Shown here one piece after another: positions 10,247 through 60,232 of a DNA stretch of 64,000 bases. The position numbers were made by a program, and so were the translations under genes. This DNA comes from Phaeosaccion multiseriatum (Eukaryota; Protista; Ochrophyta, other classes): assembly GCA_965112735.1 (NCBI GenBank), contig OZ218955.1:1302001-1366000 (forward strand), read 5' to 3'. Under the pieces are notes generated by a model that worked only from the letters and a program-made list of their open reading frames with translations, was not told the DNA's origin and searched no databases. Positions within the stretch are counted from its first letter, which is position 1. The number at the start of each line of letters is the position of its first letter.

Positions 10247-11799
10247 ATGGCGCAGAATATAGCCCCCGAGGTAAGGGTGGAGGTTTTTGTGATGGGACGG
10301 GTCTGTAAAAGAAAATGAGAGCGGGAGACCCTGTTCCATTCCTTTTCCCACCACTCCTCCTTCCTTTCTTTTTCCTTTCTCTTCAGGCTGTGCGACTCCG
10401 TCAGGCCATCAGCGTGGTGGAAAGCCTCTCCAGTGTGAAAGCGCAGGTTAGGAAGCTTGTATCAAGGCACGGTAAGGCGATCTTGGATCAGCCTGTCGAC
10501 GAAGAAGGCTGTCCGGCTATGATATGGGCTGTGGGATGCAACCGACTGGATGTCGTTGACCTTCTGCTGCAGGAGGGGGCCTCCTTCAGCACCGGGGGAG
10601 GGTCGCACGGGACCACGCCATTGATAGAGGCTAGCTTTCGGGGACACAACGAAGTGGTGAGGCGGCTGTTGGATATCGGGGCCCGTGTAGACCAGGTCGA
10701 TCTCAACGGGATGACGCCTTTGATTGCGGCTGCCACTAAAGGGCGCTTCACAACTGTGCAGCACCTCCTTCTGGCGGGGGCCGGTGTCAATGCTGCTGAT
10801 AATGAGGGATGTACTTCGATCTGGATGGCATCTCAGAATGGGCACACCTCCGTGGTGGAGCAGCTCATTGCAGCGGACGCGGATGTGGACAGACCCAGCC
10901 ATCGCGGAGTGACTCCACTCTTCGTGGCGTCCCGCGACGGGCATGGGAGTGTGGTAAAGAAGCTCATTGGGGCCAACGCCACCATCGACAAGGCTGGTGA
11001 CCAAGGCTTGACTCCACTCTTCGCAGCCTCGGCGCACGGTCACGCGTCCATCGTGCAGCAGCTTCTCGATGAGCATGCCAACGTGCATGCCAGGAACAGC
11101 AAGGGCTGTACTCCTCTCACAGTCGCTGCTCACAGAGGACGCTTGGCCGTGGTGAAGTTCCTTTTGGCTGCAGGGGCGGATGTAATCGCGTCTAACCTCG
11201 AGGGCTTCACTCCTCTGCACATGGCTGCTCAAGAAGGTCACGACGCCGTGGTGGAGCAGCTTCTTTCTGCGGGAGCAAAGGTGGAGACAAGGGCCAACAA
11301 CGGTGCAACACCCCTCCACATGGCTGCTCTACAAGGTCACGACGCCGTGGTTAGGCGCCTTCTCTCCGCAGGAGCAAAGGCGGAGACAACGGCAAGCGAC
11401 GGTACAACACCCCTCCTCCTTGCTGCTCAACAAGGTCACGACGCCGTCGTCGCTCGTCTCATCTCTGCGGGATGCCCGATCGATGCCCAGAGATCGAACG
11501 GCTGCACCCCACTGCATACCGCCATCTACTATGGCCACCATGGCATTGCACGGCAGCTCCTGTCGGCCGATGCCTCGGTGGACAAGGCCTTGGCTGCGGC
11601 ACGGCGGAATGGACTGAGCCCTGAGATTGAGCAGCCGCTCAGAGACGCAGCAGCGGCCTTCTTCCGATCGCAGAGTACACTGGACCTGATGCGAAGGACC
11701 GATCCGACCTTCGGCAAGGAGAGGGGGATGCCGCCGCTGGAGAGGCCCTGGAGTGTCGGGAGCGAGACGTGGGAGAGCATGGCGGAGGAAATGAGCTGA
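10247..11799 (+). CDS. Ankyrin-repeat protein A1 (11 repeats + conserved tail, ~478 aa)
   Basis: Exon 1 10247-10270 (MAQNIAPE|GT), acceptor CAG at 10386, exon 2 10387-11799 in frame. 11 G-x-TPL..AA..GH units, ending RDAAAAFFRSQSTLDLMRRTDPTF..PPLERPWSVGSETWESMAEEMS. Confidence 0.9.
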
Positions 11800-12387
11800 G
11801 AGGGGAAGGAGAGACGAGGGGGGGGGGTCCTAGGAATGGCGCCATGCCGCAGCATGAGCGAGAAGGGCGGGAAGCCTTCGCGCAACGAGGACGCAACGGG
11901 GACGAGGCATGCAATAGCAGACTGACTGAGTGGCACGTATGTGAAAGCGGGAGAGCAGGCAGCACGATGGGTGATAAGGAGGGGTGCGGTGGCTCGCGCC
12001 TGACGACGCTTGGAGAGAGGCGTCGTGCTCCGTTCGTCAGGGAAGGAACGAGGGGGGAGAGGGTAGAAGGTGTGGTGCAGAGGGGCAGGGGACCGCAGAG
12101 AGAGAGTGCCTCTATGCACAGTGCGAGCGAAACAATAGTGGGCGGTGCTATAGACGTGCTACGATAAAAGGGCATTTGTTTTTGTTTTACAACATTACCC
12201 TTTGCTAACATAAACACAATGAAAGCAAACTCCGAGATCTGTGCCGTCCTCTCATCTGTGCTTCAGATTCAAAAAAAGGCTCCTCGCTTGTAGTGGGGCA
12301 CGTCTGGGTGAGGAGCGGTTTTGTCTTGAGTCAGAAAGGAGCCTGCAAGGTTGCCGCCGGCTCTTGCCTAGCTTATCATTGCGTTTG

Positions 12388-12906
12388 GCGGACACAGGGA
12401 CCAACGATGGTGCAACACCCCTCCTTCTTGCTGCTCAGGAAGGTCACGAGGCCGTGGTGGAGCGGCTTCTTTCTGCCGGAGCACGGGTGGAGACAGCGGC
12501 CAACGACGGTATAACACCTCTCCACCTTGCTGCTGAAGAAGGTCACGAGGCCGTGGTGGAGCGGCTTCTTTCTGCGGGATCCCCCATCGATGCCCAGATA
12601 TTGGACGGCAGCACCCCTCAGCTTCTCGCCATCTCCAAGGGCCACCATGGCACTGTGCGGCAGCTCCTTTCGGCCGATGCCTCGGTGGACAAGGCCTTGG
12701 CTGGGGCACGGAGGTACCATCTGGCCCCCGTAATGGAGCAGCGAATCAGAGATACGGCGGCAGCCTTCTTCCGATCTCAAAGCGCATTGGACTTTATGCG
12801 AAGGACTGACCCGACCTTCTGGAAGGAGAGGGGGATGCCGCCGCTGGAGAGGCCCTGGAGTGTCGGGAGCGAGGTGTGGGAGAGCATGGCGGAGGAAATG
12901 AGCTGA
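12388..12906 (+). pseudogene. 5'-deleted ankyrin cassette A2 (last 3 repeats + conserved tail, frame open)
   Basis: The family upstream element (ctcgcttgtagtggggcacg..gtcttgagtcag, ~12280-12375) is fused directly to internal repeat sequence GTNDGATPLLLAAQEGH. No exon 1 and no N-terminal repeats. Confidence 0.75.
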
Positions 12907-14091: not shown

Positions 14092-15699
14092 ATGGCGCAG
14101 CAGGCCGTATCGTCCGAGGTAAGGCGCAACAGGGGCTCGCTCTGTGGTCTGTCGTAGGAACAAGGTGGATAATGCGGGACGAAGTTATGCTCTCTCGTGG
14201 GAGTGCTCGCGGTAGGCTGAGAGACACATCAATGTTTCTTCCAGCACAGCGTGCCCAGCGTGATCTTTTATGCGTTAACGCGTCGCTTGCGTCTCCTTTA
14301 ACACTAGGCACGGCAACTCCGCAAGGCTATCGACAGAGGAGAGAGCTTCGAAGCGGTGAAAGCGCTGGTCAGGATGCTCGTCGCAAAGCGCGGCAAGGCG
14401 AGCTTGGATCAGCGTATCGACAAGGAGGGCTTTACCCCTATGATGTCGGCTGCGTCACATGGTCGAGGGGACATATTGCTGCATCTGCGGCAGAACAACG
14501 CCTCGCTCAGCCTTGGGGGAGGGCCGCACGGTAACACGCCACTGATAGAGGCTAGCGCGAAAGGACATAGCCAGGTGGTGAGGTGGCTGGTGATAGTAGG
14601 AGCCGATTACAACCAAACGAATCACTACGGGGCAACGCCTTTGATTCATGCGGCAGCGAGCGGGCATTCCACGACTGTGCAGCAGCTCCTTTCGGTACGG
14701 ACTGATGCCGATCCCAGCGAAGCCGAGAGGCCGGGATTCTCTCCGATATGGCTGAATTCTGCACAGCCTGGTGTCAATGTCAACGCAGCCGAGAGGCAGG
14801 GATTTACTGCGATCTGGCTGGCTTCTCAAAATGGGCACACCTCCATCGTAGAGCAGCTCATTGCAGCCGACGCGGATGTGGACACACCCGACCATCGCGG
14901 AAGGACTCCACTACTGCAGGCGTCAATGCACGGGCGTGAGAGAGTGGTGCAGGCGCTCATCACGGCCAAAGCAAACATCGACAGGGCCGATGACAGAGGC
15001 TTCACTCCACTCTTCGCAGCCTCACTGCAGGGCCATGCTTCCATCGTTCAACAGCTTGTCGATGCGGGTACCAGCGTGGACGCCAGGACCAACACGGGTA
15101 CCACTCCCCTCATGACCGCCATTCGGAGTGGGCACTTGATGGCGATGGAGATACTTTTTGCGGCGAGAGCCGATGTACATGCACGTGACACCCAGGGTCG
15201 GAGTGCTCTGCATTTTGCCGCTCAAGAAGGTCACGACGCCGTGGTGGAGCGGCTCCTCTCTACAGGAGTGAATGTGGAGACAGCGACCAAAGATGGCTTC
15301 ACTCCTCTTCACTATGCCGCCCAAGGAGGTCACAACGATGTGGTGGAGCGCCTTCTCTCGCAAAATGCATCCGTGCGAACAGGGGCCAAATACGGCGCAA
15401 TTCCCCTTCACTATGCTGCGCAGAATGGGCACGAGGCCGTCGTTGCTCGTCTCATCTCTGCGGGATCTCCCATTGACGCCGAGACGATGGGCGGACACAC
15501 CCCGCTGCTTGTCGCCTTGTGCACTGAGCAGCCGGGCACTGTACGGCAGCTCCTCGCAGCCAATGCTTCGCTGGACAAGGCCTTGGCTAAGCTTGCTCAA
15601 CAGCGGAGCCACGCACGGGCTAGGGGAGAGCGGAATCAGTTGGACCCCGTGGTTGAGCAACGACGTGAACAGGCGCGCCGCGCGTCGCTCGACACGTGA
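14092..15699 (+). CDS. Ankyrin-repeat protein A3 (11 repeats, divergent, lacks the conserved tail)
   Basis: Exon 1 14092-14118 (MAQQAVSSE|GTAAGG), acceptor TAG at 14307, exon 2 14308-15699 in frame. The C-terminus diverges after ASLDKALA. Confidence 0.87.
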
Positions 15700-16486: not shown

Positions 16487-19413
16487 TCATGTGCAAGGCA
16501 CCCATGCCGGACTACTCGGCCCGTCGCCTGCTGCCGCTGCTACTCCTGGCCCTCCCCGCCACCCCTCGTCCTTGTCGGCGGGATGGCAGCACACGGTCAG
16601 CGATGGCGCCGACGCGAAGGAGGGCCACGCGCATGCCTGGGCGGCGTCTGACGGTTTCACAGCTGGCGTTTTCAGATTGGGACACTCTGAGGCGGAGAAC
16701 AGGTCACACGCCTCGCAGGAGCCGTCGCTCGAGGAGGGCGGTGTGGAAATCGCCACGTCCTGTGTGTGTGTGTGTGTGTGTGTGCGTGTGTTGTGTGTGT
16801 GTGTGTGATGCGTTAGGGTGCGGGGCATTCGATCGGTTGGGTGGAAAGAGCGGAACGGGTGAAGGGGGTGAAGGGAGTGAAGAAGGGAGGGAGGGATGGG
16901 AAAGGAGGACGCCAAGGGAGGGGAAGGGGCGTGTGAGTGTGAGCAAGAGAATGGACACACCAAGAGCCCATAGGGGGAAGCGTTGAATCAGCCAACTCTT
17001 CAGAGAGAGCCCGAAGAGCCTCTTCCTCCTCGTCCTGTCCTTCTCTCGCTCGCGCCTCCTCACCTCGAGGGAATACACTCGAACGTAGTCCACCTCCAGC
17101 ACCTGCGGCACGCTCTCCAGCCACTGGGCAGAGGGGGCAGCGCGTCCGCCTGTCCTGGCGGTAAGCGGTCCTCCCACGGCCAGGTTGAGGTTGATGGAGA
17201 AGGGCCGATCGAAGGGGGCGGGGCGGTGGTGCACGCGATCATCCTCGGACGCCTGCGTGAACCACTGCCGCTCTGTATGCGTTAGTTCTCCGTCGATACG
17301 CCATCTGTGACCGGCCGGAGGGGGCGTGCGGATGAGAAATCGACACATGTGGTGGATGGTGTAGCATGCGCCGCTCGTGAAGCCCCCCTTTCATCAGGCC
17401 CCGCGTCGCCCACCCCTCATACCACCACACACATCCTCACCCACCTAATCTCTTCCGGAGTCCACTCTACCGCATACACGTGGACGCCGTCGACGGTCTC
17501 ACGCAGGGGCGTCACCATCTCCCTCTTCCTTCCGTACGGCCAACCCTGTCCATAGTTGATGCGCGACGCCACCTCCGTCTGGTCGTTGGCCGCCCCCAGC
17601 AGCTTGATCTCGCCGGACTGGGGCCAGCCTCCGTACTCGCCCACGAGCGTCGGGCAGGCCTCCCCGGTAGCGTCCACGTCTGAGCGTGGGGAGCAAGGAC
17701 AAGGGCGACGGCAAGGGTGAGCAAGGACGATGGACAGTCGCAGCAGCAGCAGCAAGAGGCCGGAGGGAGGGAGGGAGGGAGGGAGGCCCCTTGCCTCTCT
17801 CAAAGAGCAGCAGGCCTCTCTCAGAGGGTGTGCAGCAGTGGGCAATGTAAGGTAAGGCACCGCATGCTTTGTCCTTACTGCGGCGTCGGACGGCGGCGTC
17901 TTGTGCTTCCCCTTTCCTTCTCGCGCCACTCCTGCCGCCCTCTGCCCATCTCTTCCCCATGCCTCTGGGGCGAGCAAAGCCGGTGATGGGGGCTTGAGGA
18001 TGGCCAACTCTCGCTCTACCCGGTTAGACTCGCTAGACTGAGCTAATGACTCCTCAGTCTCACCCGCTTGCGTGCAAAACGCACTCTCCTCGTTCACTGG
18101 AGCGTGGAGGAGCCAAATGTTGGACCAAATGCCCTGCCCCCCCTGGGGGAGCTTGACCCTGGCCTCGAGAACTCCGTATGTGAAGTCAAACTTCGTTACT
18201 GTGGAGAGTTTGGCGGAGGTAAAAGGGAAACTCTGCAGGCCATCAGCGGGGTCGATGGTGTACTGACACGCCTCCGCCCCGTGCTTCTCCACGCAATCAG
18301 TGAGCAGCTAGAGGGGGGGGAGAGCGTAGGCGAGAGAGAGGGATGGAGAGAGGAGTGGGGGAGAAAAAGAGGGAGAGAGAGTAGTAGTAGTAGTAGTGTA
18401 TGAGGGTGTGTGTGTGAGAGAGGGGGAGAGAGCGAGGAAGAGGGACTGTGTGCGAAGGAGGGAGAGAGATGGACCGACACAGCGAGTAGAGCCAAGTGTA
18501 GGTGGGAAGCAGAAAGGATAGGCCAGTGCTGTACCGGAGCTTCAACCCCCCCCCATTCGCGCCATTTGCATCTCCGCACCTTCATGTGAAGCTTTCCGTC
18601 CTCCACCCAAGAGTTGTCCGTGGAGGCCGAGAAGTACTGAGAAGGGAGGCAAGCAGGGCAGGATGTGAGATGTAAGGGCGTCACTTCACGTCCACCAAAA
18701 TGGAACAGGCGCGTGTGGGGGGGAGAGATGGAAAGGGGGGTGTATCTACAACAGAGGCTCCCTCGCATAGAGGGAGGGGGGCTTAATTAAACCCTGAAAG
18801 AAGAGGTGTGAGGCATTGCAAGCAGCCACGCACCTACCTCGTGCTCCCCGCTGCCCCAGCCGCAGATGCGCGGGGTGGGCTCGTACTGGCAGCCGTTGCC
18901 GACCATCCGCGTCCATTTTGTCTCGTCGAGAGAGTCGCCTTGAAAGTCATCGAAGAAGATGGTGGCGGCGCAGCGATCGTACGCAGCATCCATGCCTGGG
19001 GCCTTCCAGCCGCAGTACCTGCACCCGCTATCTTCGATACAGCCCCGACCTGACGTGGCCACATGCAGCAGATAATCAATCCGTGTGGGGGGGTTGATTA
19101 GGAGAGGTTTCGTGCCTTAGAGAGGGGAGAAGGAAGCGTACAAGCCAAGTTCATCAGGTAAATGCAAGCCCTTCTCCAGCTTACCACCAGGGCAGCCCAC
19201 GGGATCGAAGACGCAGCGAATTTCCCCATAATAGCCTGTTTGGTGTGCACATTCACCCAAGCCCAAGTCGTAGCAGTCGTCTGTGGAGGAGGGATCGGAA
19301 GGGTGATTCTCTTCTACGCTGAGGCTCGGTACTTCGCGTCTGAGCCGAGACGACGTAGCAGCGAGCGACACAAGCAGAAGCAGGAGCAGCAACTTCGTCT
19401 GTGCTTCATGCAT
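16487..19413 (-). CDS. Secreted GH16 (beta-1,3-glucanase-like) protein with Cys-rich N- and C-terminal modules; catalytic motif degenerate
   Basis: Signal-peptide-like KLLLLLLLVSLAATSS, Cys-rich CVFDPVGCPGGGRGCIEDSGCRYCG, then IFFDDFQGDSLDETKW..CGWGSGEHEYF, FTSAKLST..FTYGVLEARVKLPQGGQGIWSNIWLL, GGWPQSGEIKLLG, HVYAVEWTPEEIRWRIDG, APFDRPFSINLNLAVGG, LEVDYVRVY. About 7 exons with GT-AG boundaries. Confidence 0.88.
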
Positions 19414-19576
19414 CAACTCGTCAACCGCTGTGGACTCCTTGAGCAAGCTTCAAGGTTTACAATTGAAGGACCAACATGTGAAGGATACGTGAAGAGCGAC
19501 GGGCTCACAATGATTCACTTCCTCTACTCACAACCTTCTCTCGCCTCCTCAGTTTCCATTTCTGAAAGCACAAGGC

Positions 19577-21902
19577 ATGCAACCCATCACCGTGCGGCAG
19601 GAAATATGCCTCGAGGTACGACACTGCCCCGGGTTTTCTCCAAGATGAAGGGGCGGAGTATGGTAGTCACCAGTCAACGAGTCTTTAAGGAGCGAGGGGG
19701 AGAAGGGGGGTGCCCAGCGATGTTTCCTTCAGCCCAGCCCATCCCAACCCATAGTCTTACCCTTACAGCTGTCTCATTGCTCTTTCACTCCACCAGGGAA
19801 GGCGACTCTATCTGGCCATCGTTGGAATGGTAAGCCTCTCCACTATGAAAGCGTTGGTTAGGAAGCTCGTCGCCAAGCACGGCAAAGCGATATTGGAGAA
19901 GCCTATCGACGAAGAAGGCTATACGGCTATGATATGGGCTGCGAGACGCGGTCGGCTGGACGTTGTGGACCTTCTGCTGCAGGAGGGGGCCTCCTTCAGC
20001 ACCGGGGGAGGGTCGCACGGGATCACGCCATTGATAGAGGCTAGCCGGCGGGGACACAACGAAGTGGTGAGGCGGCTGTTGGATGTCGGGGCCCGTGTAG
20101 ACCAGGTCGATCTCAACGGAGTGACGCCTTTGATTATGGCTGCCGCTAATGGGCGCTCCACAACTGTGCAGCACCTCCTTCTGGCGGGGGCCGGTGTCAA
20201 TGCTGCTAATAATGAGGGATGTACTTCGATCCGGGAGGCTTCTCAGAATGGGCACACCTCCATCGTGGAGCGACTCATTGCAGCGGGCGCGGATGTGAAC
20301 AAAGTAGACGACATCGGAATGACTCCACTCGTCCTGGCGTCCCAATTCGGGCATGGGGGTGTGGTGCAGCGGCTTATCACGGCCAACGCCAAGATCGAAA
20401 GGGCTGATGAGAGCGGCCACACTCCACTGTGGGCAGCCTCGGAGTACGGGCATACGTCCATCGTGCAGCAGCTCCTCGATGTGTATGCCAACGTGGAGGC
20501 CCAGAGCCACAAAGGCTTTACTCCTCTCATGATCGCTGCTCACAGAGGACGCTTGGCCGTGGTGAAGCTACTTTTGGCTGCAGGGGCGGACGTACTCGCG
20601 TCCGACGTCGAGGGCGCCACTCCTCTGCACATGGCCGCTCATGAAGGTCAGGAGGCAGTGGTGGAGCGGCTTCTTTCTGCGGGAGCAAAGGTGGAGACAG
20701 CGGACAACGGTGGTGCAACACCCCTCCACATGGCCGCTCAAGAAGGTCACGACGCCGTGGTGGAGCGGCTTCTTTCTGCGGGGGCAAAGGTGGAGACAGG
20801 GACCCCCCATGGTGTAACACCCCTCCACCTTGCTGCTCAAAAAGGTCACGAGGCCGTGGTAGAGCGGCTTCTCTCTATGGGAGCAAAGTTGGAGACAGCG
20901 ACCAACAATGGTACAACACCCCTCCACCTTGCTGTTGTAGGAGGTCATGAGGCCGTGATGGAGCGGCTTCTCTCTATGGGAGCACGGGTGGAGACAGCGA
21001 CTAACAGTGGTGCAACACCCCTTCACTGGGCTGCTGAAGAAGGTCAGGAGGCAGTGTTGGAGCGCCTTCTCTCTGCAGGAGCAAAGGTGGACACAGAGGA
21101 CAGCGATGGTGCAACACCCCTCTACCTTGCTGCTCAAAATGGACACGAGGCCGTGGTGGAGCGGCTTGTCTCTGCAGGAGCAAAGGTGGAGACAGCGAAC
21201 AAAAATGGTAAAACACCCCTCCACCTTGCTGCTGAAAACGGTCAGGAGGTCGTGGTGGAGCGTCTTCTCTCTGCAGGAGCAAAGGTGGAGACAACGAACA
21301 AACAGGGTGCAACACCCCTCCACTTTGCTGCTGGAAAAGGTCACGAGGCCGTGGTGGAGCGGCTTCTCGCTGCAGGAGCAAAGGTGGAGACAGCTGAGAA
21401 CGATGGTGTAACACCCCTCCACCTTGCTGCTCATGGAGGTCACGAGGCCGTGGTGGAGCGGCTTCTCGCTGCAGGAACAAAGGTGGAGACAGCGAGTAAC
21501 GATGGTATAATACCCCTCCACATGGCCGCTCAACAAGGTCAGGAGGCCGTCGTCGCTCGTCTCATCTCTGCAGGATCCCCGATCGATGCCCAGAGATCGA
21601 ACGGCTGCACCCCACTGCTTTCCGCCATCCTCAACAATCATCCCGGCACTGCACGGCAGCTCCTCTCGGCCGATGCCTCGGTGGACAAGGTCTTGGCTGG
21701 GGCACGGAGGCATCAACTCGGCCCAGAGTTTGAGCAGCGGCTCAGAGACGCAGCAGCGGCCTTCTTCCGATCGCAGAGTACGCTGGACCTGATGCGAAGG
21801 AGTGACCCGACCTTCTGCAAGGAGAAGGGGATTCCGCCGCTGGAGAGGCCCTGGAGTGTCGGGAGCGAGGCGTGGGAGAGCATGGCGGAGGAAATGAGCT
21901 GA
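19577..21902 (+). CDS. Ankyrin-repeat protein A4 (18 repeats + conserved tail, ~714 aa)
   Basis: Putative exon 1 19577-19615 (MQPITVRQEICLE|GT), acceptor CAG at 19796, exon 2 19797-21902 in frame. A block of highly similar 99-bp repeats spans ~20610-21600. Confidence 0.9.
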
Positions 21903-23370
21903 AGTCAAGAGTAGTTTCAGGCCATGGGGAGTATGGGCATACCACGATGCGATGCCAGAGAGGCACCGTCCATGGCACTTTCAGATCGACTTGGCGGGAA
22001 TGACTTTGGGATCGAAGCAAAAGGAACGGGGTCGGGGGGGGGGGGGGGGATTCAACAGGTGTAGTAAACAGATTCACATAGGGGTAGCTAACAAATAGGT
22101 TCAATACAGTGCTCGAGTTTTGTTAGGCGAAGGATTTTGTTCGGGTAAGATGCACATCGGGAGTTCCGCTCGCTCGGGTGGGCGGAGGCATTCCAAAATC
22201 GAGATACGATATGCCCATAAGGTTCTTGGGTCGGGCGCCGCAGGCGGGCACAGCAATTGGTCGTAGATTGGAGGGGGCACAATTCCCCTAATCTCCGGCA
22301 CAAGCGCATACGCGAAGGTGATGCCAGCAGTGGGGTGCTGTGCTCGGGTGGAGGCAAAGGCAAGCCACACGATCATCGAGGCAGCTGCTGTGCAGTCCAG
22401 TCGAAGCAATACCCACTCACTCACACTCACACTCACTCACTCACTCACTCACCCTCACTCACTCACCCACTCACTCACTCCCGTCATCGAGCAGAGTCTT
22501 GTGAGCCACCGCTGCTCCCTCCATTGGTTCCTATCGTCTTCACAAAGGCTTGCCTTCGGCGAGAGCAACACTCCGCTACAACGTAACCATCAGCGCATGT
22601 CTGTCGTGGGATCGTCCTATCCATCTTCACTTGAAAAAGAGGCAAACGAACTCGGTCCCCACCCCCCCCCCGAGGCGAGAGGACTTCTATGGGGCTTACG
22701 TAAGCCTTCTGCAGACCCTTATGTAGGCCTTTGGTTAGTCCTCACGTACACCTCTGTTGGCCTGTGGAAGGGTCAGGTCAGGACTTGGAGGGTGTCGACG
22801 CCAAGCAAGTGCCAAGCATTGACTTAACAGTAGCTCTTGTATCCTCAGCTTTCTCGCGTGCAACTAAAGAACCTGAGTAGCATGGATGTTGGTGCTCGCG
22901 TTAGTTTGCATTACTGCTACAAACCTTAAGGCCTTACTCTTGGGGGAGGAAAAGGGGTCAGGACCTGGAGGGGCCTAACGCTCCAGCAGTTTCAGTCTCA
23001 GTTTCAGTCTCGATGCCCCCCCCCTCCTCCCCGTGGTGGACCTGCCCTTGATCGCGCTCATACACGCCCAGTGGGCGGGGCAAAGTGGTAAGAGACGACT
23101 GAGGACTGAGGCGTGGGGACTGATGTCTGACCACTGATAACTGAGCAACTGAGCACGTCAGGACGCGAGGCCGTCTTCCCTCAATCAACTCTCCCTTCCC
23201 CCCCCCAAAGCCCAGGCGTAAAAGCCGCCCGTGAGGAGACGAAGAAGGAAGAGAGGGGGGAGAGGGAAGGACCAGCTGTTGGAGGGAATGCTTGCTGCAA
23301 TCACTCACCCAACTTCCTCCGCCATATGCACTGGGCAACACATGGCGCGTCGCTCGTGCTCGTCTGTACA
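21903..23370. repeat. ~1.5-kb duplicated 3' flank of A4 (second copy ~26373-27905 after A5)
   Basis: Both copies start gaagtcaagagta.. at the ankyrin stop and share long near-identical stretches, including (CACT)n and ccatcttcacttgaaaaagaggcaaacgaactcgg. Confidence 0.9.
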
Positions 23371-24486
23371 CACGGCCGACGATGATTCGAGTCAAGACGT
23401 ACGGAGGAGATGGGCGGGAAAGCTTCGCGCGTCGAGAGCGAAGTATCATGGAACATCACATCGAGCAGCGGTACATGGCGGCGGGAGAGTGAACAGCGAG
23501 AGCGGTGCGAAAGAAGTGGTGCTTCTCTAGGGCCTGAGGACGCTCTGGAGAGGGGCGCCATGGGTCGTGTGTGGCACAGGGGGTGCTGCTGCCTCGACAA
23601 AGTGTGAGTGGGGGGGTTGCTGCATGAACCTGCAGACTTCGTATGGGTTTTACTCTTCAAAGGAGGGGGGCAGGCTAGGTAGGAGGCGTTCTAGGCGCGC
23701 GCGCACACACACACACACACACACGCACACACAAGTTGGCAATTGAAGGACACTACACGTCGCAGATAAGTGTATATCCGAGAGGAAAACTTGAGGGGCC
23801 CTCTTGGACAAGCCTGTGTATGGAGAAACGCCCGTGTGTCGTGTCGCGAGTCGTCAAGCGGTGCAATCAACGGGAGCGAGAGCGACGCTGTCGACTGGCC
23901 TTGCACTCGCTCTGTGCCATCCATGGGTCTCCGAGTCACGCACGTCTCGCACCCACCCCCCACTGTGAAAGGCATCAGACAGATAGATATAAGTGAATTC
24001 CCTCACATGGGGAAGGACCCACAACCCCGACGAGAAAGGAAGAAATGGCTGCCTACGCCTGGGCCATTGACATATTCTGGGCTCCGTGCCTCTTCATTTG
24101 TATGCGGGAATGTAGCAAAGGGAAAGGACCCTGATAGGCAGAGCGTGGAAAGCTCTTGAGAGAGCCCTCCTTACTCTTCACTTGTAGTGGGGCACGCCTG
24201 GGGAGGAGGGGCTTGTCTTGAGTCAGGATTTGGTCGGCTTGGTTCCCCCCCGCTCTCACCTAGCTTAGCGCCGCGTTGGCCTCTCCTTGTACAGAGAGTA
24301 CGAAGAAAGGACCGTGACAGGCTGTGAGGACAACGCGGCGAGGGAGCCCTCCTTCCCCGACACTTTTCGTGCGACACGCCTGAGGGGGACGGGCATCGCC
24401 TGCTTGGTTCCCCCGGTTTTCTCTTCCCCCCGCTCTCGCCCTCTCCTGCGAGAGGCTGGGGATCGGCAGGTCAACCCGTCCTCACC

Positions 24487-28467: not shown

Positions 28468-28775
28468 GGAGAGCACGTTAGAGGTGGCCGCGCAGAGGGG
28501 AGCAAGCGTGAGAGGTGGCAGGCAAGAGTGCAGCGCTTGGCAGTGGAGGACAAGGCCAGAGGGCGGGGTACAGGCCCGTCTGTACCCCTCCTCACTACCC
28601 CCTGCCTTCTGCTGCTCTCTATTCCTCCGTCTCTGTCCCTCTTCTCCGCCCCTCCTCTTTTACTCCTCTCTGCCCCCCTTCCTGCGCAATACTCGAATGA
28701 ACAAATGGACCCAGACAAACCAACCACTAGTTTTTCCTCCCTCGTACGTAAGGTCTAACGACTGCGTAAACTGTG

Positions 28776-38895: not shown

Positions 38896-38974
<79 letters not shown>

Positions 38975-43920: not shown

Positions 43921-44170
43921 CGTGAATGAGTGAGTGAGTGAGTGAGTGAGTGAGTGAGTGAGTGAGTGAGTGAGTGAGTGAGTGAGTGAGTGAGTGAGTG
44001 AGTGAGTGAGTGAGTGAGTGAGTGAGTGAGTGAGTGAGTGAGTGAGTGAGTGAGTGAGTGAGTGAGTGAGTGAGTGAGTGAGTGAGTGAGCGAGTGAGTG
44101 AGTGAGTGAGTGAGTGAGTGAGTGAGTGAGTGAGTGAGTGAGTGAGTGAGTGAGTGAGTGAGTGAGTGAG
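43921..44170. repeat. (GTGA)n microsatellite
   Basis: Visible run. Homologous runs occur at ~50246-50270 (short) and 61628+ (very long). Confidence 0.95.
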
Positions 44171-44174
44171 GGAG

Positions 44175-45898: not shown

Positions 45899-47562
45899 TC
45901 AGCGCATTTCCTCCGCCATGCTCTCCCACACCTCGCTGCTCACACTCCAGGGCCTCTCCAGCGGCGGCATCCCCCTCTCCTTGCCGAAGGTCGGGTCGGT
46001 CCTTCGCATCAGGTCCAGTGCGCTTTGAGATCTGAAGAAGGCTGCTGCTGCGTCTCTGAGCCGCTGCTCAATCTCACGGCCCAGTCCATTCCGCCGTGCC
46101 GCAGCCAAGGCCTTGTCAACCGAGGCATCGGCCGAGAGGAGCTGCCGCGCAGTGCCGTGATGATTAGTGTAGATGGCGAGAAGCAGTGGGGTGGCGCCGT
46201 TCGTTTTCTGGGCATCGATCGGGGATCTGGCAGAGATGAGTCGAGCGACGACGGCCTCGTGTCCGTTTTGAACAGCAAGGTGGAGGGGTGTTGCACCATG
46301 GTTGTCCGCTGTCTCCACCTTTGCTCCTGCAGAGAGTAGGCGCTTAACCATGGCGTCGTGACCTTCTTGAACAGCAAGGTAGAGGGGTGTCCTACCGTCG
46401 TTGGTCGCTGTCTCCACCTTTGCTCCCGCAGAAAAAAGCTGCTCCACCACGGCGTCGTGACCTTCCTGAGCGGCGAAGTGTAGAGGAGTGGCGCCCTCGG
46501 GGTGAGACGCGAGTACGTCCGCCCCTGCAGCCAAAAGTAACTTCACCACGGCCAAGCGTCCTCTGTGAGCAGCGATTATGAGAGGAGTAAAGCCCAGGTT
46601 GTCCCTGGCCTCCACGTTGGCATGCTCACCGAGGAGCTGCTGCACGATGGACGCGTGACCGTAGTCCGAGGCTGCGAAGAGTGGAGTGAAGCCTTGGTCA
46701 TCAGCCTTTTCGATGTTGGCGTTGGCCCCAATGAGCTCCTGCACCACACTCCCATGCCCTTGGCGGGACGCCACGATGAGTGGAGTCATTCCTTGATGGT
46801 CGGGTCTGTCCACATCCGCGTCCGCTGCGATGAGCTGCTCTACGATGGAGAGGTTCCCATCAAGAGCCGCCAGCCGTATCGGAGTCGCTCCATGCTTATT
46901 GGCAATATTGACATCGGCCCGAGCCGAGATTAGCTGTTGCACTGTCGTGGGATGCCCGAAGAAGGCAGCTAAACTCAAAGGCGTTGCCTCTTTGACATTG
47001 GCTTGGTCTACAGCGGCTCCGATGTCCAACAGCCGTCTCACCACCTCGTTGTGTCCTTTCGCTACAGCCAATAGCAGTGGCGTGTTCCCGACCGAACCCC
47101 CCCGAACGCTGAACGAGGCTCCTTCCTGCAGAAGAAGGTTCAGGACATCCAGCCGACCGCATGACGCAGACAACATCATAGCGGTCAAACCCCCCTCGTT
47201 GATAGGCTGATCCAAGCTCGCTTTACCGTGCTTTGAGACAAGCTTCCTCACCCGCGCATTCACACTGGGGGTGCTTTCCATCCCTGTGATGGCCTCACGG
47301 AGTCGGCGCGCCTACCATTATGTGCAGAGCGTAGGGAAAGGCAGGCGGTGAGAACGACACGCAAGGTGGGATTGGACCAGGTGGGCTCGGCCGGGCTGGA
47401 GGGGAAACCATCGATTCAAGAACCTCAGCCGAACACTCCGTCTCCCTTTGAGAGACTCACTCCTGCTGGCATCTCTCGCATCATCCGCCTTATTCCTACT
47501 ACACGCCACAGAGAGAGCCCCTGCTGTGCCCTTACCTCCGGTGGGATGGCCTGCTGCGCCAT
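45899..47562 (-). CDS. Ankyrin-repeat protein A7 (11 repeats + conserved tail)
   Basis: Exon 1 47562-47536 (MAQQAIPPE|GTAAGG), acceptor TAG, exon 2 47311-45899 in frame. Confidence 0.9.
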
Positions 47563-52017: not shown

Positions 52018-53684
52018 CTAGGGCATTTCCTCCGCCATGCTCTCCCACGTCTCGCTCCCGACACTCCAGGGCCTCTCTAGCGGCGGAATCTCCCTCTCCT
52101 TGCCGAAGGTCGGATCGGTCCTTCGCATCAGGTCCAGTGCGCTTTGAGATCGGAAGAAGGCTGCTGCTGCGTCTCTGAGCCGCTGCTCAAGCTCGAGGTG
52201 GAGTTGATGTCTCCGTGCCACAGTCAAGGCCTTGCCCACCGAGGCATCGGCCGCGAGGAGCTGCCGCGGAGTGCCATGGTGGCCATAGCAGATGGCGAGA
52301 AGCAGTGGGGTGGCGCCGTTCGTTTTCTGGGCATCGATCGGGGATCCGGCAGAGATGAGACGAGCGACGACGGCCTCGTGTCCTTCTTGAGCAGCAAGGT
52401 GGAGGGGTATTGTACCGTTGTTGGTCGCTGTCTCCACCTTTGCTCCCGTAGAAAGAAGCTGCTCCACCACGGCGTCGTGACCTTCTTGAGCGGCCATGGG
52501 CAGAGGAGTGGCGCCCACGAGGTCAGACGCGAATACGTCCGCCCCTGCAGCCAAAAGTACCTTCACCACGGCCAAGCGTCCTCTGAGAGCAGCGTTCATG
52601 AGAGGAGTACAGCCCTCATCGTCCCTGGCCTCCACGTAGGCATGCTCATCGAGAAGCTTCTGCACGATGGACGCATGCCCGTACTCCGAGGCTGCGCAAA
52701 GCGGAGTCACGCCTTGGTCATCAGCCTTTTCGATGTTGGCGTTGGCCCCAATGAGCTTCTGTACCACACCCCCATGCCCTTTTTGGGACGCCATGATGAG
52801 TGGAGTCACTCCGAGATGGTCGGCTTTGTCCACATCCGCGTCCGCTGCAATGAGCTTGTGCACCACACTCCCATGGCCGTTTTGGGACGCCACAAAGAGT
52901 GGAGTTGCTCCGTGATGGTGGGGTCTGTCCACATCCGCGTCCGCTGCAATGAGCTGCTCTACGATGGAGGTGTGCCCACAGAGAGAAGCCTCCCATATCG
53001 GAGTCGTTCCCTCCGCATCGGCAATATTGACATCGGCGCCCAACGAGATTAGCTGTTGCACTGTCGTGGGGTGCCCACAGCAGGCAGCCGCATTCAAAGG
53101 CGTTACATCCCCGGTATTGGCTTGGTCAACGGCGGCTCCGATGTCCAACAGCCGTCTCACCACCTCGTTGTGTCCTTTCGCTACAGCCAATAGAAGTGGC
53201 GTGGTCCCACACGCTCTCCTCCCAACGCTAAACGAGGCCCCTTCCTGCAGGAGGAGGTTCAGGACATCCAGCCGACCGCATGACGCAGACAACATCATAG
53301 CGGTCAAACCCCCCTCGTTGATAGGCTGATCCAAGCTCGCTTTACCGTGCTTTGAGACAAGCTGCCTCACCCGCGCATTCACACTGGAGGTGCTTCCCAT
53401 CCCTGTGATGGCCTGACAGAGTCGACGCGCCTGCCATGGAGTGTGCAAAGCGTTGAGAAAGATAGGCAATGAGAACGACACGCAAGGTGGGATTGGACCA
53501 GGCTGGGCTCGGCCGGGCTGGAGGGGAAACCATCGATTCAAGAACCTAAGCCGAACACTCCGTCTCCCTTTGAGAGACTCACTCCTGCTGGCATCTCTCG
53601 CATCATCCGCCTTATTCCTACTACACACCACAGAGAGAGCCCCTGCTGTGCCCTTACCTCGGGTAGGATGGCCTGCTGCGCCAT
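52018..53684 (-). CDS. Ankyrin-repeat protein A8 (11 repeats + conserved tail)
   Basis: Exon 1 53684-53658 (MAQQAILPE|GTAAGG), exon 2 53430-52018 in frame. It has an extra repeat in the N-terminal block and one fewer in the variable block. Confidence 0.9.
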
Positions 53685-54331
53685 GGCAAGCGGAGTGGGA
53701 GCGGCAGCTCTTCGTCGCTAGCCCCCCCGCCTCCACCCTCCTGAGACGGACCGCAGTGCTGATACGAGAAAGGGGTTCTCTTTCAAACGCGTTGTTACCC
53801 AGTCACTCGCTCTATCTATCGCGGACCTTGCCCCTTCTCTCTGTGCAATGAGGCCAACGCAGCGCTAAGCTGCTGCTAGGTGTGAGAGCAGGGGGGAACC
53901 AAGCGGCCCCTTCCTGACCCAAGACAGATCCCTCCTCCTCCAGGCGAGGCCCACTACAAGCGAAGAGGGGGGAGGGCTCTCTCAACAGCTTTTCACGCTC
54001 TGTCGATCACGATCCTTCCCTCTACATATTGCTTAGAGGCATGGAGCCCAGAATATGTCATCGTCATATGGGGGCCTCTTAAGCAACGCGTCACCTCCTT
54101 TCTCTCTCGTAAGTGCAGCCCCTGGGACATCCGGGGACTTGGCTCCCACAGCACTCGCTGGGAGGACAGAAGCTGGGTGAGTTTGCTCCTCTCTTTCCTC
54201 CGGTTTCGAGGCAGCGGCCGCGTCGACGGAGCTCTGACACGTTCGTCTCTTCGCCTGTCATACAAGCTTCTTCGCCCCTTCCCAGCGCAGCCCAGACCGT
54301 CCCTGCTGTATCTACTTCGCTCAGAAAGAAG

Positions 54332-57322
54332 ATGAGCACACTCAGCAGCATCATCGATGAACCCATTCTCCTGTCTTCCATTCACGGGCGGGATCGCAGA
54401 CAGACGCGAAACATAGGAAAGCGCGATCTTGAGGAAGTAGTCAAGCACGGCGTACGACAAAAGTCGCACAAAGACCCCAAGACAGGCCTCCATCGCTGGA
54501 AATACACCTTTGCCAACATCGTGTTCATCACAGACCACAGCAGCACCAAGGAGGTCACCTCCTGGGTCCTCCCTCTGGACATACATCCCGTGCCCGTGAC
54601 GGGAACGGATGAGTGCAATCATGACCTGCTCAAGGAGGGGCTCTTGAACAGCCCGGAGATGTGCACGAGCCACACTGTGCTCGTGGTGGATGCCAGCGGG
54701 TCGATGAGGACCTGCGATGTGGAGAACTACAAGACTAGATCAGATGCTGTCTACGGGACGCTGGCCCTCGACCTTCTGGGGAAGCAGCTTGACGCGCTTC
54801 AGGTCAGCGGCACCGATGTGGTCTCTCTCATCGAGATGCACGAGGAGTCACACCTCATCTTTGACCGCGAGCCGCTCACCAACGTCCTGTACAATCGCCT
54901 CCTGAAGCGCAAACACGCCGTCAAGCCTTCCTACGGAGGCAACTTCTTGCCGGCCCTTCGCATGGCCCAAGATATTCTCAGCACTGGCCCTGGGAAGTAC
55001 AGTCGGAGCTGCGCACTCCTGCTCTTGTTCCTCTCGGACGGCAGGTATGTGATGGTATGGCGACGACAGAGCGCTTGTGCACCCACATCCTACCTTTGCC
55101 GCATTCAGCCTCCGAATGAGTCCACTCCATCTCCCTTACGCATTCACCCCCTTTCTCCATCACTCACTCTGTTCTAATGACTTGTGCTTCGCTCTTCTAA
55201 AGGCCTAGCGACAAGAAGCTTGGCGGCAATCGGGACAAGACCATCGAGGATCTCACTGGGCAGATTGCCGGCACATTCCGGGAGCGACTGCAGATGGAAA
55301 CCATCGCCTTCGCAAACACGCAGCAGTGCGACGTCAGCCTGCTGCAGAGAATGGCCGATGCCGCCACGGCCAACGGAAGCAAGGGGAGCTTCAACTCCAC
55401 CGGGCTCTGCGCCACTACCCTCAGTTCGGTGGTGAGCAGGTTGAGCTCCAATCTGTCTATGACGCGGAGTCAGATGACCGCGAGGGATGACGGGGGGCCG
55501 AGTCGGAGGGGCCCGGCTCGTGTGGTCGAGAGGGAAGCGCAGCATGCTTCATCATCATCATCGTACCGCCGCGAGCAAGGTCACCTCGTTTCAAGGAACC
55601 CTTTTTTGCCGGCCTACTCGTGCTGCTCCAATGTGTGCGAGGACACAGGCTGGAGAGTCTACACCGAGAACGTATCGCGTGCTGTGTGGACGCCATTGTC
55701 GTCGAGTGGGGAGCCCGGGCAGAGGAGAAACAGAGTGCAGAGCAGGGGGAAGAGCGAGTGGGTGTATGAGCCGTTGCTGAGCCCGGCTGCATGCGGTGTT
55801 GCGATCCGAGCCAGGAGCATCGGTGAGGGCTGCGAGCGCATCGTCTTTCAGATGAAGGAGATTGCCCCATGTCCAGCCAGCTGCGATCTCAGCCACGTGG
55901 ACGGCCGTTTCGCGCTTGTGGGCCCCGATATGGTGGGGAAGGAGAGCAGATATGTGGAGGAGGAGCAGGCCAAGCTGCGCTTCCACAAGACCTTTTGCGA
56001 CACGCAGCAGTGGTCACAGACGTACGCGGAGATGTTCAATCGCCAGGTGCATAGACACACGCGTACACACACACACACATGGACGCGCACGCACACACAA
56101 GCTCACACACCCACGCACGCACACACAAAAAAAAAATCAACCGTTGAATCATTGCTTCCTCCCCCCAGGTTGACCTCACATTCTCTCTTCAAGGCGGGGC
56201 GGCAGGGGCTCAAACCATTGCTCACGTCACATTCTTGGAGCCGAGCGTGTACGTCTTCACGGACCCCGCCAGCAAGTAAGTACATCCACGCATGTGTCAA
56301 AGCAGAACGTACCTGTGTTCACTGTGAATCCCACTGCTGCTCCGTGGTGGTTGCTGATGCCTCGCCCTTCTTCCGCCAGCTACGAGCGCGGCGTGTTGGC
56401 GGAGAAGAGGCTAGACGTGAGTAGGTATGCCAAATGGAACTCCAACAATGGCTTTGTGCTGGGGGCTGCTCCGCCCCCTCGAGACCACGTGCACGTCTCG
56501 GCTCTGCTGGAGAGCCTTAGCCAGTGTCGAACTGAGAGGCGACAACCTGCAGCCTTGATCGGTCTGTCGCAGCCACAGCAGCAGCAGCAGGGGCATCTCG
56601 CTCCGGTGGCAGAAGGAGACTCCTCCGAGGAGGAAGAGGAGGACGACAGCGACGACGACGACGCGTATGCCCAGGGGGTTAGGCAAAGTCCGGCAGCAGG
56701 AAAAACAGCAGCGGCAGCAGCAGTATCAGGAGGAGGAGGAGGAGGAGAAGAAGGAGAAGAAGGAGGAGAAGGAGGAGAAGGAGAAGGAGGAGGAGGAGCT
56801 GCCGCGGGGGCAAGGGCACCAGCACTGACAACAAACGCCGCCGCGGTGAAGCTCGAGGACTTCCCGCAGGCCTTCTCGCACTTCTCGTACCGCAAGAGCA
56901 GCAGGAGGAAGTTGCTCGTGTGCGACCTGCAGGGCGTGCTAGACGAGTCGGCCTCTCCATCGCTGTTCGAGCTCACGGACCCGGTCATCCACCACATATC
57001 CAGGTCGTCGGAGCGGAAGAAACGGTTCGGGCGGACCGACCATGGGCGCACGGGAGGTAAAAAATGAAGCCAAGGAGGAATAGCAAAGGTTCCTGTCCTT
57101 TCCTCCCGTCTTCTTGCCCTCTGAATCTACGCCTCACCCAGCCACGCACACACAAACGCACCCCGTCCCCCCTTCCCTTCCTTTGCAGTGAGCAAGTTCT
57201 TCAAAACGCACAAGTGCAACGCTGTGTGCCGCATGCTGGGCCTGCCGCCGGACACTGGGGAGGAAGATCCCTCCTCTTCGCCGAAGGGCACCAACAATCC
57301 CAAGAGGAAGCAACGACGTTGA
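54332..57322 (+). CDS. Alpha-kinase (eEF2K/MHCK-type) with vWA domain and small N-terminal DUF4258-like domain
   Basis: vWA: VLVVDASGSM (MIDAS), GGNFLPAL, LLLFLSDGRP. Kinase: IGEGCERIVF, VGKE, FLEPSVY, AEKRL..YAKWNSNNG, PQAFSHFSY, LLVCDLQG, LTDPVIH, FGRTDHG, FFKTHKCNAVC. Exons 54332-55044, 55203-56046, 56169-56275, 56380-57056 and 57189-57322 are phase-consistent. Confidence 0.9.
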
Positions 57323-57891
57323 ACCATCCTGAGGCCTACCCATCCCGAGCTGGAGCCGCTCCACCGCCCGAGGGGAGGAGAGTGTCGCAGGGCACGAGGC
57401 ACTCCACTGCTGGGGGTGTGAGGGGTTCCACTCAGGGGCGTGAGGGTTCAGATCAGCCTGCTGACCACCGTGAGTAAGAGAGAATAGGACCGTAAGAGAG
57501 AAAGACAGAGGACTGTGAGGGAGAGAGAGAGAGCGACCGAGAGAGAGAGAGACAGAGAGGGAGAGGGAGATAGACGAAGGCACACACTGAGAGAGAGAGA
57601 GTCAGCACGCCTTCCATTGTAGCTCGAATAATATTTCTCTTAAATTGAATGTAAGGCGAAGGGCAAGAGTGAGCATGAGGAGGTGCGTGGCCACTGCGGC
57701 GCTGAGAGGCGGATGCAGGACGGTGACGTGGCTTCCTCTACTGCTGCGCCTGCTACTCACGCTCCGCCGCCGTAGAGCGGCCCTTCCTGCTGCTCAAGTC
57801 ACTCTACCACAGGCCCCGTGCAAGCGAGCACACGCGTCACTTTCTCTCCTCTCCAACTCACCCCCGCCCCCCCCCCCAACGCTCAGGCCCT

Positions 57892-60232
57892 TCAGCGCAT
57901 TTCCTCTACCATGCTCTCCCACACGTCGCTCCCGACACTCCAGGGCCTCTCTAGCGGCGGAATCCCCCTCTCCTTGCCGAAGGTCGGATCGGTCCTTCGC
58001 ATCAGGTCCAGTGCGCTTTGAGATCGGAAGAAGGCTGCTGCTGCGTCTCTGAGCCGCTGCTCAAGCTCGAGGTGGAGTTGATAACTCCGTGCCACAGTCA
58101 AGGCCTTGTCCACCGAGGCATCGGCCGAAAGGAGCTGCCGCACAATGCCGTGATGATTCATGTAGATGGCGAGAAGCAGAGGGGTGCTGCCCTCCGATCT
58201 TTGGTCGTCGATGGGTGACCCGGCAGAGATGAGACGAGCGACGACGGTCTCATGACCTTGTTGAGCAGCAAGGTGGAGGGGCGTTGAGCCGTCGTTGCCT
58301 GCTGTCTCCACCTTTGCTCCTGCAGAGAGAAGCCGCTTAACCACGGCGTCGTGACCTTCCCAAGCAGCAAGGTGGAGGGGTGTCGCACCTTCGGTTCTCC
58401 CTATCTCCGCTCTGGCTCCCGCAGTCAGAAGGCCCTTAACCACGGCGTCGTGACCTTGTTCAGCGGCAACGTGGAGGGGTGTTGTACCGCGGTTGTCCGC
58501 TGTCTCCACCTTTGCTCCTGCAGAGAGAAGCCGCTCCACCACGGCCTCGTGACCTTCCCAAGCAGCAAGGTGGAGGGGTGTTGCACCACGGTTGGACGCT
58601 GTCTCCACTCTGGCTCCCGCAGTCAGAAGGCGCTCCATCACGGCGTCTTGACCTTCGCTAGCAGCAACGTGGAGGGGTGTTGAGCCGTCGTTGGCTGCTG
58701 TCTCCACCTTTGCTCCTGCAGAGAGAAGCCGCTCCACCACGGCGTCGTGACCTTGTATAGCAGCAAGGTGGAGGAGTGTTAAACCATCGTTGTCCGCTGT
58801 CTCCACCTTTGCTCCTGCAGAGAGAAGCCGCTTAACCACGGCGTCGTGACCTTGTTTAGCGGCAAGGTGGAGGGGCGTTGTACCGCGGTTGTCCGCTGTC
58901 TCCACCTTTGCTCCTGCAGAGAGAAGCCGCTTAACCACGGCCTCGTGACCTTCTTGAGCGGCGAAGTGGAGGGGCGTTGTACCGCGGTTGTCCGCTGTCT
59001 CCACCTTTGCTCCCGCAGAGAGAAGCCGCTCCACCACGGCCTCGTGACCTTCCCAAGCAGCAAGGTGGAGGGGTGTTGCACCGTCGCTTTTCCGTGTATC
59101 CACTCTGGCTCCCGCAGTCAGAAGCTGCTCCACCACGGCGTCGTGACCTTGGTGAGCGGCGAACTGTAGAGGAGTGAAGCCCTCGGGGTGAGACGCGAGT
59201 ACGTCCGCCCCTGCAGCCAATAGTAGCTTCACCACGGCCAAGCGTCCTCTGTGAGCAGCGACTTTGAGAGGAGTAAAGCCCTCGTTGTTCCTGACCTCCA
59301 CGTTGGCATGCTCATCGAGAAGCTGCTGCACGATTGACGCATGCCCATACTCCGAGGCTGCGTGAAGGGGAGTGAAGCCTTGGTCATCAGCATTGTCGAT
59401 GGTGGCGTTGGCCCCAATGAGCTTCTTTACCACACTCCCATGCCCGTCGCGGGACGCCACGAAGAGTGGAGTCATTCCGCGATGGTGGGGTCTGTCTACA
59501 TCCGCGTCCGCTGCAATGAGCTGCTCTACGATGGAGGTGTGCCCATCTTGAGCCGCCAGCCATATCGGAGTCGCTCCATGCTTCATGGCAATATTGACAT
59601 CGGCCCCCGCCGAGATTAGCTGCTGTACTGTCGTGGGATGCCCCATGGTGACAGCGTAACCCAAAGGCGTAACCTCGTTGATATTGACTTGGTCTACAGC
59701 GGCTCCGATGTCCAACAGCCGTCTCACCACCTCGTTGTGTCCTTTCGCTACAGCCAATAGCAGTGGCGTGTTCCCCCACGATCCCCGAACGCTGAACGAG
59801 GCCCCTTCCTCCAGAAGAAGGTTCAAGACATCCAGCCGACCGCATGACGCAGACAATATCATAGCGGTGGGGCCATGTTCGTGGATAGGCTGATCCAAGC
59901 TCGCTTTACCGTGCTTTGAGATAAGCTTCCTCACCCGCGCATTCACAGTGGAGAGGCTTTCCATCCCACTGATGGCCTGACAGAGTCGACGCGCCTGCCA
60001 TGGAGTGTGCAAAGCGTTGAGAAAGATAGGCAATGAGAACGACACGCCAGGTGGGATTGGGGGGGGATAGAGGGAAACCATCGTTTCAAGAACCTAAGCC
60101 GAACACTCCACCTTCCTTTGAGAGACTCACTCCTGCACGCATCTCTCGCATCATCCGCCTTATTCCTACTACACACCACAGAGAGAGCCCCTGCTGTGCC
60201 CTTACCTCGGGCGGAATGGCCTGTTGCGCCAT
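57892..60232 (-). CDS. Ankyrin-repeat protein A9 (18 repeats + conserved tail, ~709 aa)
   Basis: Exon 1 60232-60206 (MAQQAIPPE|GTAAGG), exon 2 59994-57892 in frame. Confidence 0.9.

Follow-up and report, generated by a model that had tools for sequence, protein, structure and literature searches.

The 64,000-nucleotide window analysed here (positions 1,302,001 to 1,366,000 of contig OZ218955.1 of Phaeosaccion multiseriatum), which has the appearance of eukaryotic DNA with a GC content of 55-64%, long microsatellites and spliceosomal introns, harbours nine long ankyrin (ANK) reading frames or fragments, namely eight intact genes and one truncated copy, designated A1 to A9. The members A1-A5 are encoded on the forward strand and A6-A9 on the reverse strand, the two inverted sub-clusters converging over a 14.5-kb spacer. 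All repeats of each gene are located in one uninterrupted exon of 1392-2106 bp, which in all full genes except A3 also encodes a constant C-terminal tail. The genes are located as follows, with exon 2 as the long repeat exon:

A1, 10247-11799, forward strand: exon 1 10247-10270, exon 2 10387-11799 (1413 bp); 11 ANK repeats and tail
A2, 12397-12906, forward strand: truncated copy with one block repeat, the penultimate repeat, the cap and the full tail; frame open
A3, 14092-15699, forward strand: exon 1 14092-14118, exon 2 14308-15699 (1392 bp); 11 repeats, tail absent
A4, 19797-21902, forward strand: exon 2 of 2106 bp; 18 repeats and tail; nine-unit block of 99-bp repeats at 20613-21503
A5, 24487-26372, forward strand: exon 1 24487-24513, intron 24514-24761, exon 2 24762-26372 (1611 bp); 13 repeats and tail; repeat block at 25578-25973
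A6, 40901-42563, reverse strand: exon 2 40901-42313 (1413 bp), exon 1 42537-42563; 11 repeats and tail; the member modelled with AF2 (AlphaFold2)
A7, 45899-47562, reverse strand: exon 2 45899-47311 (1413 bp), exon 1 47536-47562; 11 repeats and tail
A8, 52018-53684, reverse strand: exon 2 52018-53430 (1413 bp), exon 1 53658-53684; 11 repeats and tail
A9, 57892-60232, reverse strand: exon 2 57892-59994 (2103 bp), exon 1 60206-60232; 18 repeats and tail; block of nine 99-bp units at 58291-59181

In seven genes a first exon of only 24-27 bp, encoding a MAQQAIPPE-type peptide and ending at a GTAAG donor, is located 110-250 bp upstream of the long exon. It was found by scanning for a short exon running from an ATG to a GAG directly in front of the GTAAG donor, and the starts of exon 2 were set by the shared acceptor context. 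In the case of A4, the sole candidate is a 39-bp exon at 19577-19615, which does not resemble exon 1 of the other genes and has zero cover in the sequencing run designated X5 below. The most divergent member is A3 with 58% identity to A6, a 24-amino-acid insertion in repeat 3 and an early end; a tail remnant was searched for 3' of the gene and none was found. For the truncated A2, neither N-terminal repeats nor an upstream exon 1 were found, and this copy may represent either a short gene that functions by itself or the terminal exon of a different gene. The original prediction, made from the bare sequence, had described eight complete paralogues and one truncated cassette with a constant tail in all but A3, all of which are recovered at their places, the tail being present in eight copies (seven full genes and A2). 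Its exon 2 lengths of 1413 bp for A1, A6, A7 and A8, 1611 bp for A5, 2106 bp for A4 and 2103 bp for A9 are reproduced exactly, and the tiny exon 1 that it assigned to every gene stands for seven genes but not for A4, where the dissimilar candidate is unsupported by reads.

The order along the protein is a helical N-terminal cap, seven position-specific repeats, a block of one to nine similar 33-amino-acid units, a penultimate repeat, a capping repeat and the tail; the roughly seven specialised N-terminal repeats, expandable block and capping repeat proposed beforehand are thus seen in the aligned proteins, with the number of seven confirmed. With a strict spacing of 33 amino acids, the proteins contain 11 (A1, A3, A6, A7 and A8), 13 (A5) or 18 repeats (A4 and A9), the block contributing one unit in A8, two in A1, A3, A6 and A7, four in A5 and nine in A4 and A9. 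A8 arrives at the same 1413-bp exon 2 by way of one additional N-terminal repeat and one block repeat fewer.

The block units share 68-99% identity on the DNA level, with a mean of about 81% (78-81% within A4, A5 and A9), and 55-100% on the protein level, with means of 0.70 (A4), 0.67 (A5) and 0.72 (A9); Tandem Repeats Finder reports 79-86% matches in the 99-bp arrays. The 99-bp repeats had been called near-identical, a description that does not hold at about 81% DNA and 70% protein identity. That the DNA identity of the block (81%) exceeds the protein identity (70%) points to an excess of amino-acid-changing differences. The unit-by-unit identity matrix of the two 18-repeat genes A4 and A9 displays no diagonal, which shows that their expansions are independent. 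Units 9 and 14 of A9 are 99% identical and mark a recent event, and units 9-11 of A5 match units 14-16 of A9 at 91-95%, which demonstrates a retained order or an exchange between genes on opposite strands.

The assignment to the ankyrin class draws on Pfam and on structure; the Pfam families PF00023 and PF12796 are matched with E-values of 1e-68 to 1e-132 in the four members that were scanned, and the repeats carry a TPLH-type motif. Only ANK-type families pass the threshold in these four members, with NACHT, NB-ARC, TIR, HET, death-fold or any other signalling domain absent, in line with the stand-alone ANK family without NACHT or NB-ARC that had been postulated. The AF2 model of A6, with a mean predicted local distance difference test (pLDDT) of 88 and a predicted template-modelling score (pTM) of 0.79, shows paired helices every 33 residues that build an ANK solenoid up to residue ~393, followed by three helices of falling confidence (residues 398-438) and a last stretch of about 30 residues with a pLDDT below 50. 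Upon comparison of this model with Foldseek, ankyrin-R/B are matched with a template-modelling score of up to 0.79 and a root-mean-square deviation of 1.8-3.9, and the best matches in the PDB are designed ankyrin repeat proteins (DARPins; 35-42% identity) and ankyrin-R/B. The specialised N-terminal repeats match only generic ANK proteins at 28-43% identity in searches against proteins, with no orthologues among them. As neither a signal peptide nor a membrane segment is present, with no hydrophobic segment outside the ANK helices, any recognition by these proteins would be intracellular.

To assess selection, the surface class was defined in advance by the six repeat positions at which DARPins are randomised (2, 3, 5, 13, 14 and 33), and the ratio of nonsynonymous to synonymous divergence (dN/dS, omega) was derived from Nei-Gojobori counts in nine positionally orthologous repeats compared between genes. 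The ratio of surface dN to overall dS is 1.3-3.65 in 28 of 28 paralogue pairs, and scaffold dN/dS is 0.33-0.73 across the 28 pairs. When three phylogenetically independent pairs (A4/A5, A6/A9 and A7/A8) are pooled, the proportion of nonsynonymous differences at the surface (pN) is 0.276 versus a proportion of synonymous differences (pS) of 0.134, a ratio of 2.06 (Fisher p=6e-9), with ratios of 0.43 for the scaffold and 0.64 for the tail, the latter being about 0.4 against the tail's own silent sites. Among A6-A9 intron divergence (0.04-0.11) is lower than dS (0.10-0.20), and surface dN reaches 0.23-0.54; since introns diverge less than silent sites, the surface excess does not stem from depressed silent-site divergence. 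At the eight positions that vary most over the 31 block units, dN is 0.69 versus a scaffold dS of 0.34, a comparison that counts less as the class was picked after seeing the data. In the numbering used here, the most variable repeat positions are 2, 33, 11, 6, 32, 7, 10 and 31, which correspond to the beta-turn tip and the first helix and line the concave groove. The hypervariable surfaces of the original prediction are borne out by the pN/pS of 2.06 at the surface versus 0.43 in the scaffold, and the pattern that would have spoken against it, a dN/dS of at most 1 spread evenly over surface and framework, is not seen by these counting estimates of about 2 and 0.43, respectively.

Along the genes A6-A9 the nearest paralogue changes. 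In four-taxon patterns, 38 of 55 informative sites support the grouping (A6,A9),(A7,A8), and the remaining 17 fall in runs (permutation p=1e-4); these site patterns show gene-conversion patches between paralogues. From one inverted cluster to the other, silent sites diverge by 0.36-0.45 over repeats 1-3 and by 0.065-0.21 from repeat 5 to the stop codon, an unevenness which suggests that the 3' two-thirds of the genes have been partly homogenised between the clusters over 30-40 kb. Diversification by repeat shuffling, as previously proposed, is therefore supported by the independent intragenic expansions in A4 and A9 together with the recombination patches between paralogues.

While the groove is fast-changing, the tail is constant, and this combination is the signature of a recognition-protein family. 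The tail comprises 66-77 amino acids in eight copies with 80-94% protein identity, its 77-codon segment being located at:

11566-11796, forward strand: tail of A1
12673-12903, forward strand: tail of A2
21669-21899, forward strand: tail of A4
26139-26369, forward strand: tail of A5
40904-41134, reverse strand: tail of A6
45902-46132, reverse strand: tail of A7
52021-52251, reverse strand: tail of A8
57895-58125, reverse strand: tail of A9

In its predicted form, a set of helices leads into an acidic, disordered end that contains two tryptophans, and the motifs PPLERPW and WESM are invariant, in the order PPLERPW...WESM. The overall omega of the tail is about 0.3, and the tail of the truncated A2 has an omega of 0.2-0.3 at a dS of 0.42-0.55; being under purifying selection in its tail, A2 is probably not a dead fragment. 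Folded on its own, the tail yields helices and disorder at low confidence with a pTM of 0.38, which does not suffice for a search by fold.

The search for relatives of the tail took seven routes. None were found in a word-indexed search of 5.8 billion proteins, and a tail profile (HMMER) against 1.84 billion representative proteins gave one spurious match, to a repetitive protein. Seven tails compared with Pfam at E-values of up to 10 recovered DUF6862 and ULD_3 only, at an E-value of about 0.2, with SOCS_box, F-box, PRANC and BTB absent. A profile search against PDB sequences gave nothing relevant, the features of the ESM Atlas nothing usable with scores of at most 0.85, and viral contigs of IMG/VR and metagenome contigs of JGI contained no relatives. 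Within the window, no tail-like peptide is found beyond the eight copies. Judged by public data, the family is thus lineage-restricted. An origin of the cluster from a giant virus was weighed and set aside, as the tail is without viral relatives, the GC content equals that of the adjoining DNA and the genes share a conserved spliceosomal intron.

With respect to expression, the locus is represented in five public runs, contigs of which were aligned at a likeness of at least 90% to positions 19500-25499. Run X5, which derives from a different sample and study and the type of which was guessed as 'DNA?', contains two contigs in which exactly 24514-24761 (248 bases, GT..AG) are skipped by a joint with at its shorter side 58 bases; the skipped stretch is the predicted intron of A5. 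Furthermore, the depth of this run tracks the exons, with 0 upstream of A4, about 6 in the bin of the A5 intron and, at the stop codon of A4, a fall from some 1300 to some 40. The exon-shaped depth and the intron-less joint 24513/24762 indicate that run X5 behaves like a transcriptome, and one or more members, be it A5 or a paralogue of at least 90% likeness, are probably expressed and spliced in agreement with the gene model. The 3' flanks of A4 (22249-23372) and A5 (26754-27905) are duplicated with 90% identity, and the depth of the same run is about 180 at 22900-23700, so that the duplication unit may carry a transcribed element along. Three other runs consist of contigs of 120-300 bases only, thousands of which stack at 90-99% likeness on the ANK block, a pile-up that fits a very large family genome-wide. 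An assembly artefact was likewise set aside as a source of the copies, as these differ by 10-20% and have distinct flanks, and the contigs of the three runs reproduce unique stretches of the A4 array without difference, although at about 120-300 bases these contigs are too short for the length of the array and may come from the source sample.

Several other features accompany the ANK genes. Two open reading frames (ORFs) at 38544-39023 and 39105-39635 on the forward strand, just 3' of A6, each match part of the Macro domain, which binds or hydrolyses ADP-ribose (E-values of 2e-8 and 3e-13) and probably constitute one intron-split gene. Between A8 and A9, a vWA ORF at 54113-55177 and an alpha-kinase ORF at 56294-57067, both on the forward strand, are probably one gene; a tail-like peptide or another link to the ANK genes was not found in them. 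A GH16-like ORF is located between A3 and A4 (17417-18292, reverse strand; Pfam E-value of 3e-8, covering profile positions 30-65 only), and a protein-kinase ORF at 7353-8078 on the reverse strand. Nothing ties the Macro, vWA/alpha-kinase, GH16-like and protein-kinase neighbours functionally to the ANK genes. Microsatellites occur as (TGAC)63 at 243-494, (GGA)105 at 1447-1760, (GAGG)86 at 28126-28469 and (GTGA)64 at 43922-44176, and a 2.4-kb (GTGA/GTG)n tract with a GC skew of 1.0 occupies the end of the window (61628-64000). GTGA tracts border duplicated ANK units.

These observations can be combined in the proposal that the cluster represents a lineage-restricted, tandemly duplicated family of intracellular ANK binding proteins, in which each paralogue would bind a different protein target via its groove, while the constant tail, composed of a helical extension of the cap and a disordered acidic end with tryptophans, would serve as a docking peptide for one common partner. 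The proteins would then act as interchangeable adaptors, probably in biotic conflict with viruses, pathogens or selfish elements. A docking role is suggested by the resemblance of the conserved, disordered, acidic, tryptophan-bearing tail end to a short docking motif. For the whole package of recognition-type evolution, variable groove and constant docking tail, we estimate a probability of roughly 0.6. Its evolutionary part is very well supported and highly probable, and the docking function of the tail, which draws on conservation and a structural prediction, is put forward tentatively, with doubt prevailing.

Several points weigh against this proposal. The dN/dS values derive from Nei-Gojobori counting applied to recombining paralogues, and the scaffold omega of 0.33-0.73 is high, so that some members may be drifting. 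The case for tail docking consists of conservation and predicted disorder, and the tail matches nothing in the databases. In the last 30 codons (e.g. 40904-40993, reverse strand), silent sites are conserved as well, with a pS of 0.11-0.12 versus 0.24-0.31 in the tail's helical portion; part of the tail constancy may hence reflect gene conversion or constraint on the RNA level and not constraint on the protein level. Finally, expression is derived from a single run of guessed type, in which the joint may stem from another, closely similar paralogue of at least 90% likeness.

Among the alternatives, the original prediction of innate-immune or allorecognition receptors ranks first. Here, the ANK array would sense a non-self ligand and the tail would trigger the response, as an analogue of the fungal HET-E arrays of the NOD-like receptor (NLR) class that lacks the nucleotide-binding oligomerisation domain (NOD). 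Diversifying selection on the binding surface, variation in repeat number and recombination constitute the same regime as in the repeat domains of fungal NLRs (PMC4986451), and the Macro domain, vWA with alpha-kinase and GH16-like genes nearby are possibly of the conflict type. These neighbours are, however, single genes without a demonstrated link to the ANK genes. NACHT/NB-ARC, TIR, HET, death-fold and any signalling domain are absent, the internal conservation of the repeats lies under 85%, and adaptors, inhibitors or decoys explain the signature equally well. On balance, such a receptor function is unlikely. A bolder extension, namely a NOD-less intracellular repertoire of hundreds of germline-encoded 'natural DARPins', every one with its own non-self protein to bind and all signalling via the constant orphan tail to a common effector, is speculative and improbable at present; to our knowledge, there is no published description of an immune architecture of this kind from a eukaryote.

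Based on the layout of an N-terminal ANK array and a short constant C-terminal module is the possibility that the tail is a cryptic ligase-docking box, similar to the SOCS box of ASB proteins or the F-box-like PRANC of poxvirus ANK proteins, by which each paralogue would mark a different target for degradation as a substrate adaptor of a ubiquitin ligase. Yet no SOCS_box, F-box, PRANC or BTB is recovered from the tails by Pfam at E-values of up to 10, the PDB profile search gave nothing relevant, and the tail model consists of helices and disorder at low confidence, which leaves this option with a small probability. Even less probable is an action of the tail as an intramolecular autoinhibitory ligand in its own ANK groove, as in ankyrin-R/B. 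The best structural matches do include AnkB/AnkR solved with their own autoinhibition segments (4rlv, 5y4f and 5y4d), and the tail end is conserved and disordered; however, a hypervariable groove facing a constant tail is hard to square with a specific cis interaction, and AF2 leaves the tail undocked with a pLDDT below 50. Least probable of all is an ordinary ANK expansion of redundant, drifting or dying paralogues under relaxed constraint and without recognition function, for which the scaffold omega of 0.33-0.73, the lack of a tail in A3, of a convincing exon 1 in A4 and the truncation of A2 may be cited, but eight long frames remain intact at 10-20% DNA divergence, relaxation cannot lift dN above dS, yet dN at the surface exceeds dS twofold and intron divergence severalfold, purifying selection acts on the tail down to the truncated A2, and a spliced product is present in run X5.

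With respect to significance, the recognition of viruses and pathogens in photosynthetic stramenopiles is still poorly understood, LRR-ROCO and NB-ARC-TPR proteins being the published candidates. The cluster presents the signature of a recognition repertoire in a testable form, that is, as short, soluble, single-domain proteins with a defined variable surface, and the tail of about 66 amino acids can be used as bait for a shared partner and, as a probe, for counting the members of the family. Should docking prove to be the function of the tail, a new adaptor module would be defined by it; otherwise, the cluster still provides a clean case, from nature, of the diversification of an ANK surface by repeat duplication, gene conversion and selection.

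The closest parallel in terms of evolution are the fungal HET-E/HET-D/NWD NLRs, which share with the present family differences in repeat number, repeats that are exchanged within members and from member to member, and residues under positive selection on the binding surface (PMC4986451). In contrast to the fungal HET-E/NWD proteins, the present family does not possess a NACHT/NB-ARC or an N-terminal effector domain and has an orphan C-terminal tail, and the variation is between paralogues and not between alleles. High internal conservation has been defined in the fungal NLRs as more than 85% amino-acid identity across 100 or more residues (Dyrka et al., 2014; PMC4986451). At about 70% protein identity the block repeats are below this value, with just one window of 100 amino acids, in A9, reaching 0.86, so that they do not attain the level of the high-internal-conservation arrays to which the original prediction likened them.

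Within the stramenopiles, the brown-algal LRR-ROCO and NB-ARC-TPR families are described to diversify by exon shuffling (Zambounis et al., 2012; PMC3341825). They likewise are a fast-evolving family of repeat proteins proposed for pathogen recognition, and differ from the present family, which has a single repeat exon, another repeat type and neither ROCO nor NB-ARC. Searches of the literature yielded no account of a comparable stand-alone family of ANK proteins in algae.

The similarity to DARPins and consensus ANK proteins extends to the block repeat, which is near the ANK consensus, and to the naturally hypervariable positions, which correspond to the randomised DARPin positions plus 1, 9 and 10, whereas natural genes with 11-18 repeats, seven specialised N-terminal repeats, a helical C-terminal extension and a constant tail set the family apart. 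In the ASB (ANK-SOCS box) proteins and the ANK-PRANC proteins of poxviruses and insects, a variable ANK array is combined with a constant C-terminal module of about 50-70 amino acids, and these families are expanded and fast-evolving. The present family shares the variable ANK array and the short constant C-terminal module, but its tail shows no SOCS-box, F-box or PRANC signal in Pfam at E-values of up to 10. The family is also unlike the variable lymphocyte receptors of lampreys, in which an incomplete germline gene is completed somatically from flanking repeat cassettes, as eight genes are complete in the assembly and the partial A2 has its own tail under purifying selection. Cumulatively, the evolutionary regime is already known from the fungal NLR repeats and the layout of an ANK array with a C-terminal box from ASB and PRANC proteins, while its occurrence as stand-alone proteins, its orphan tail and the lineage of its host are new.

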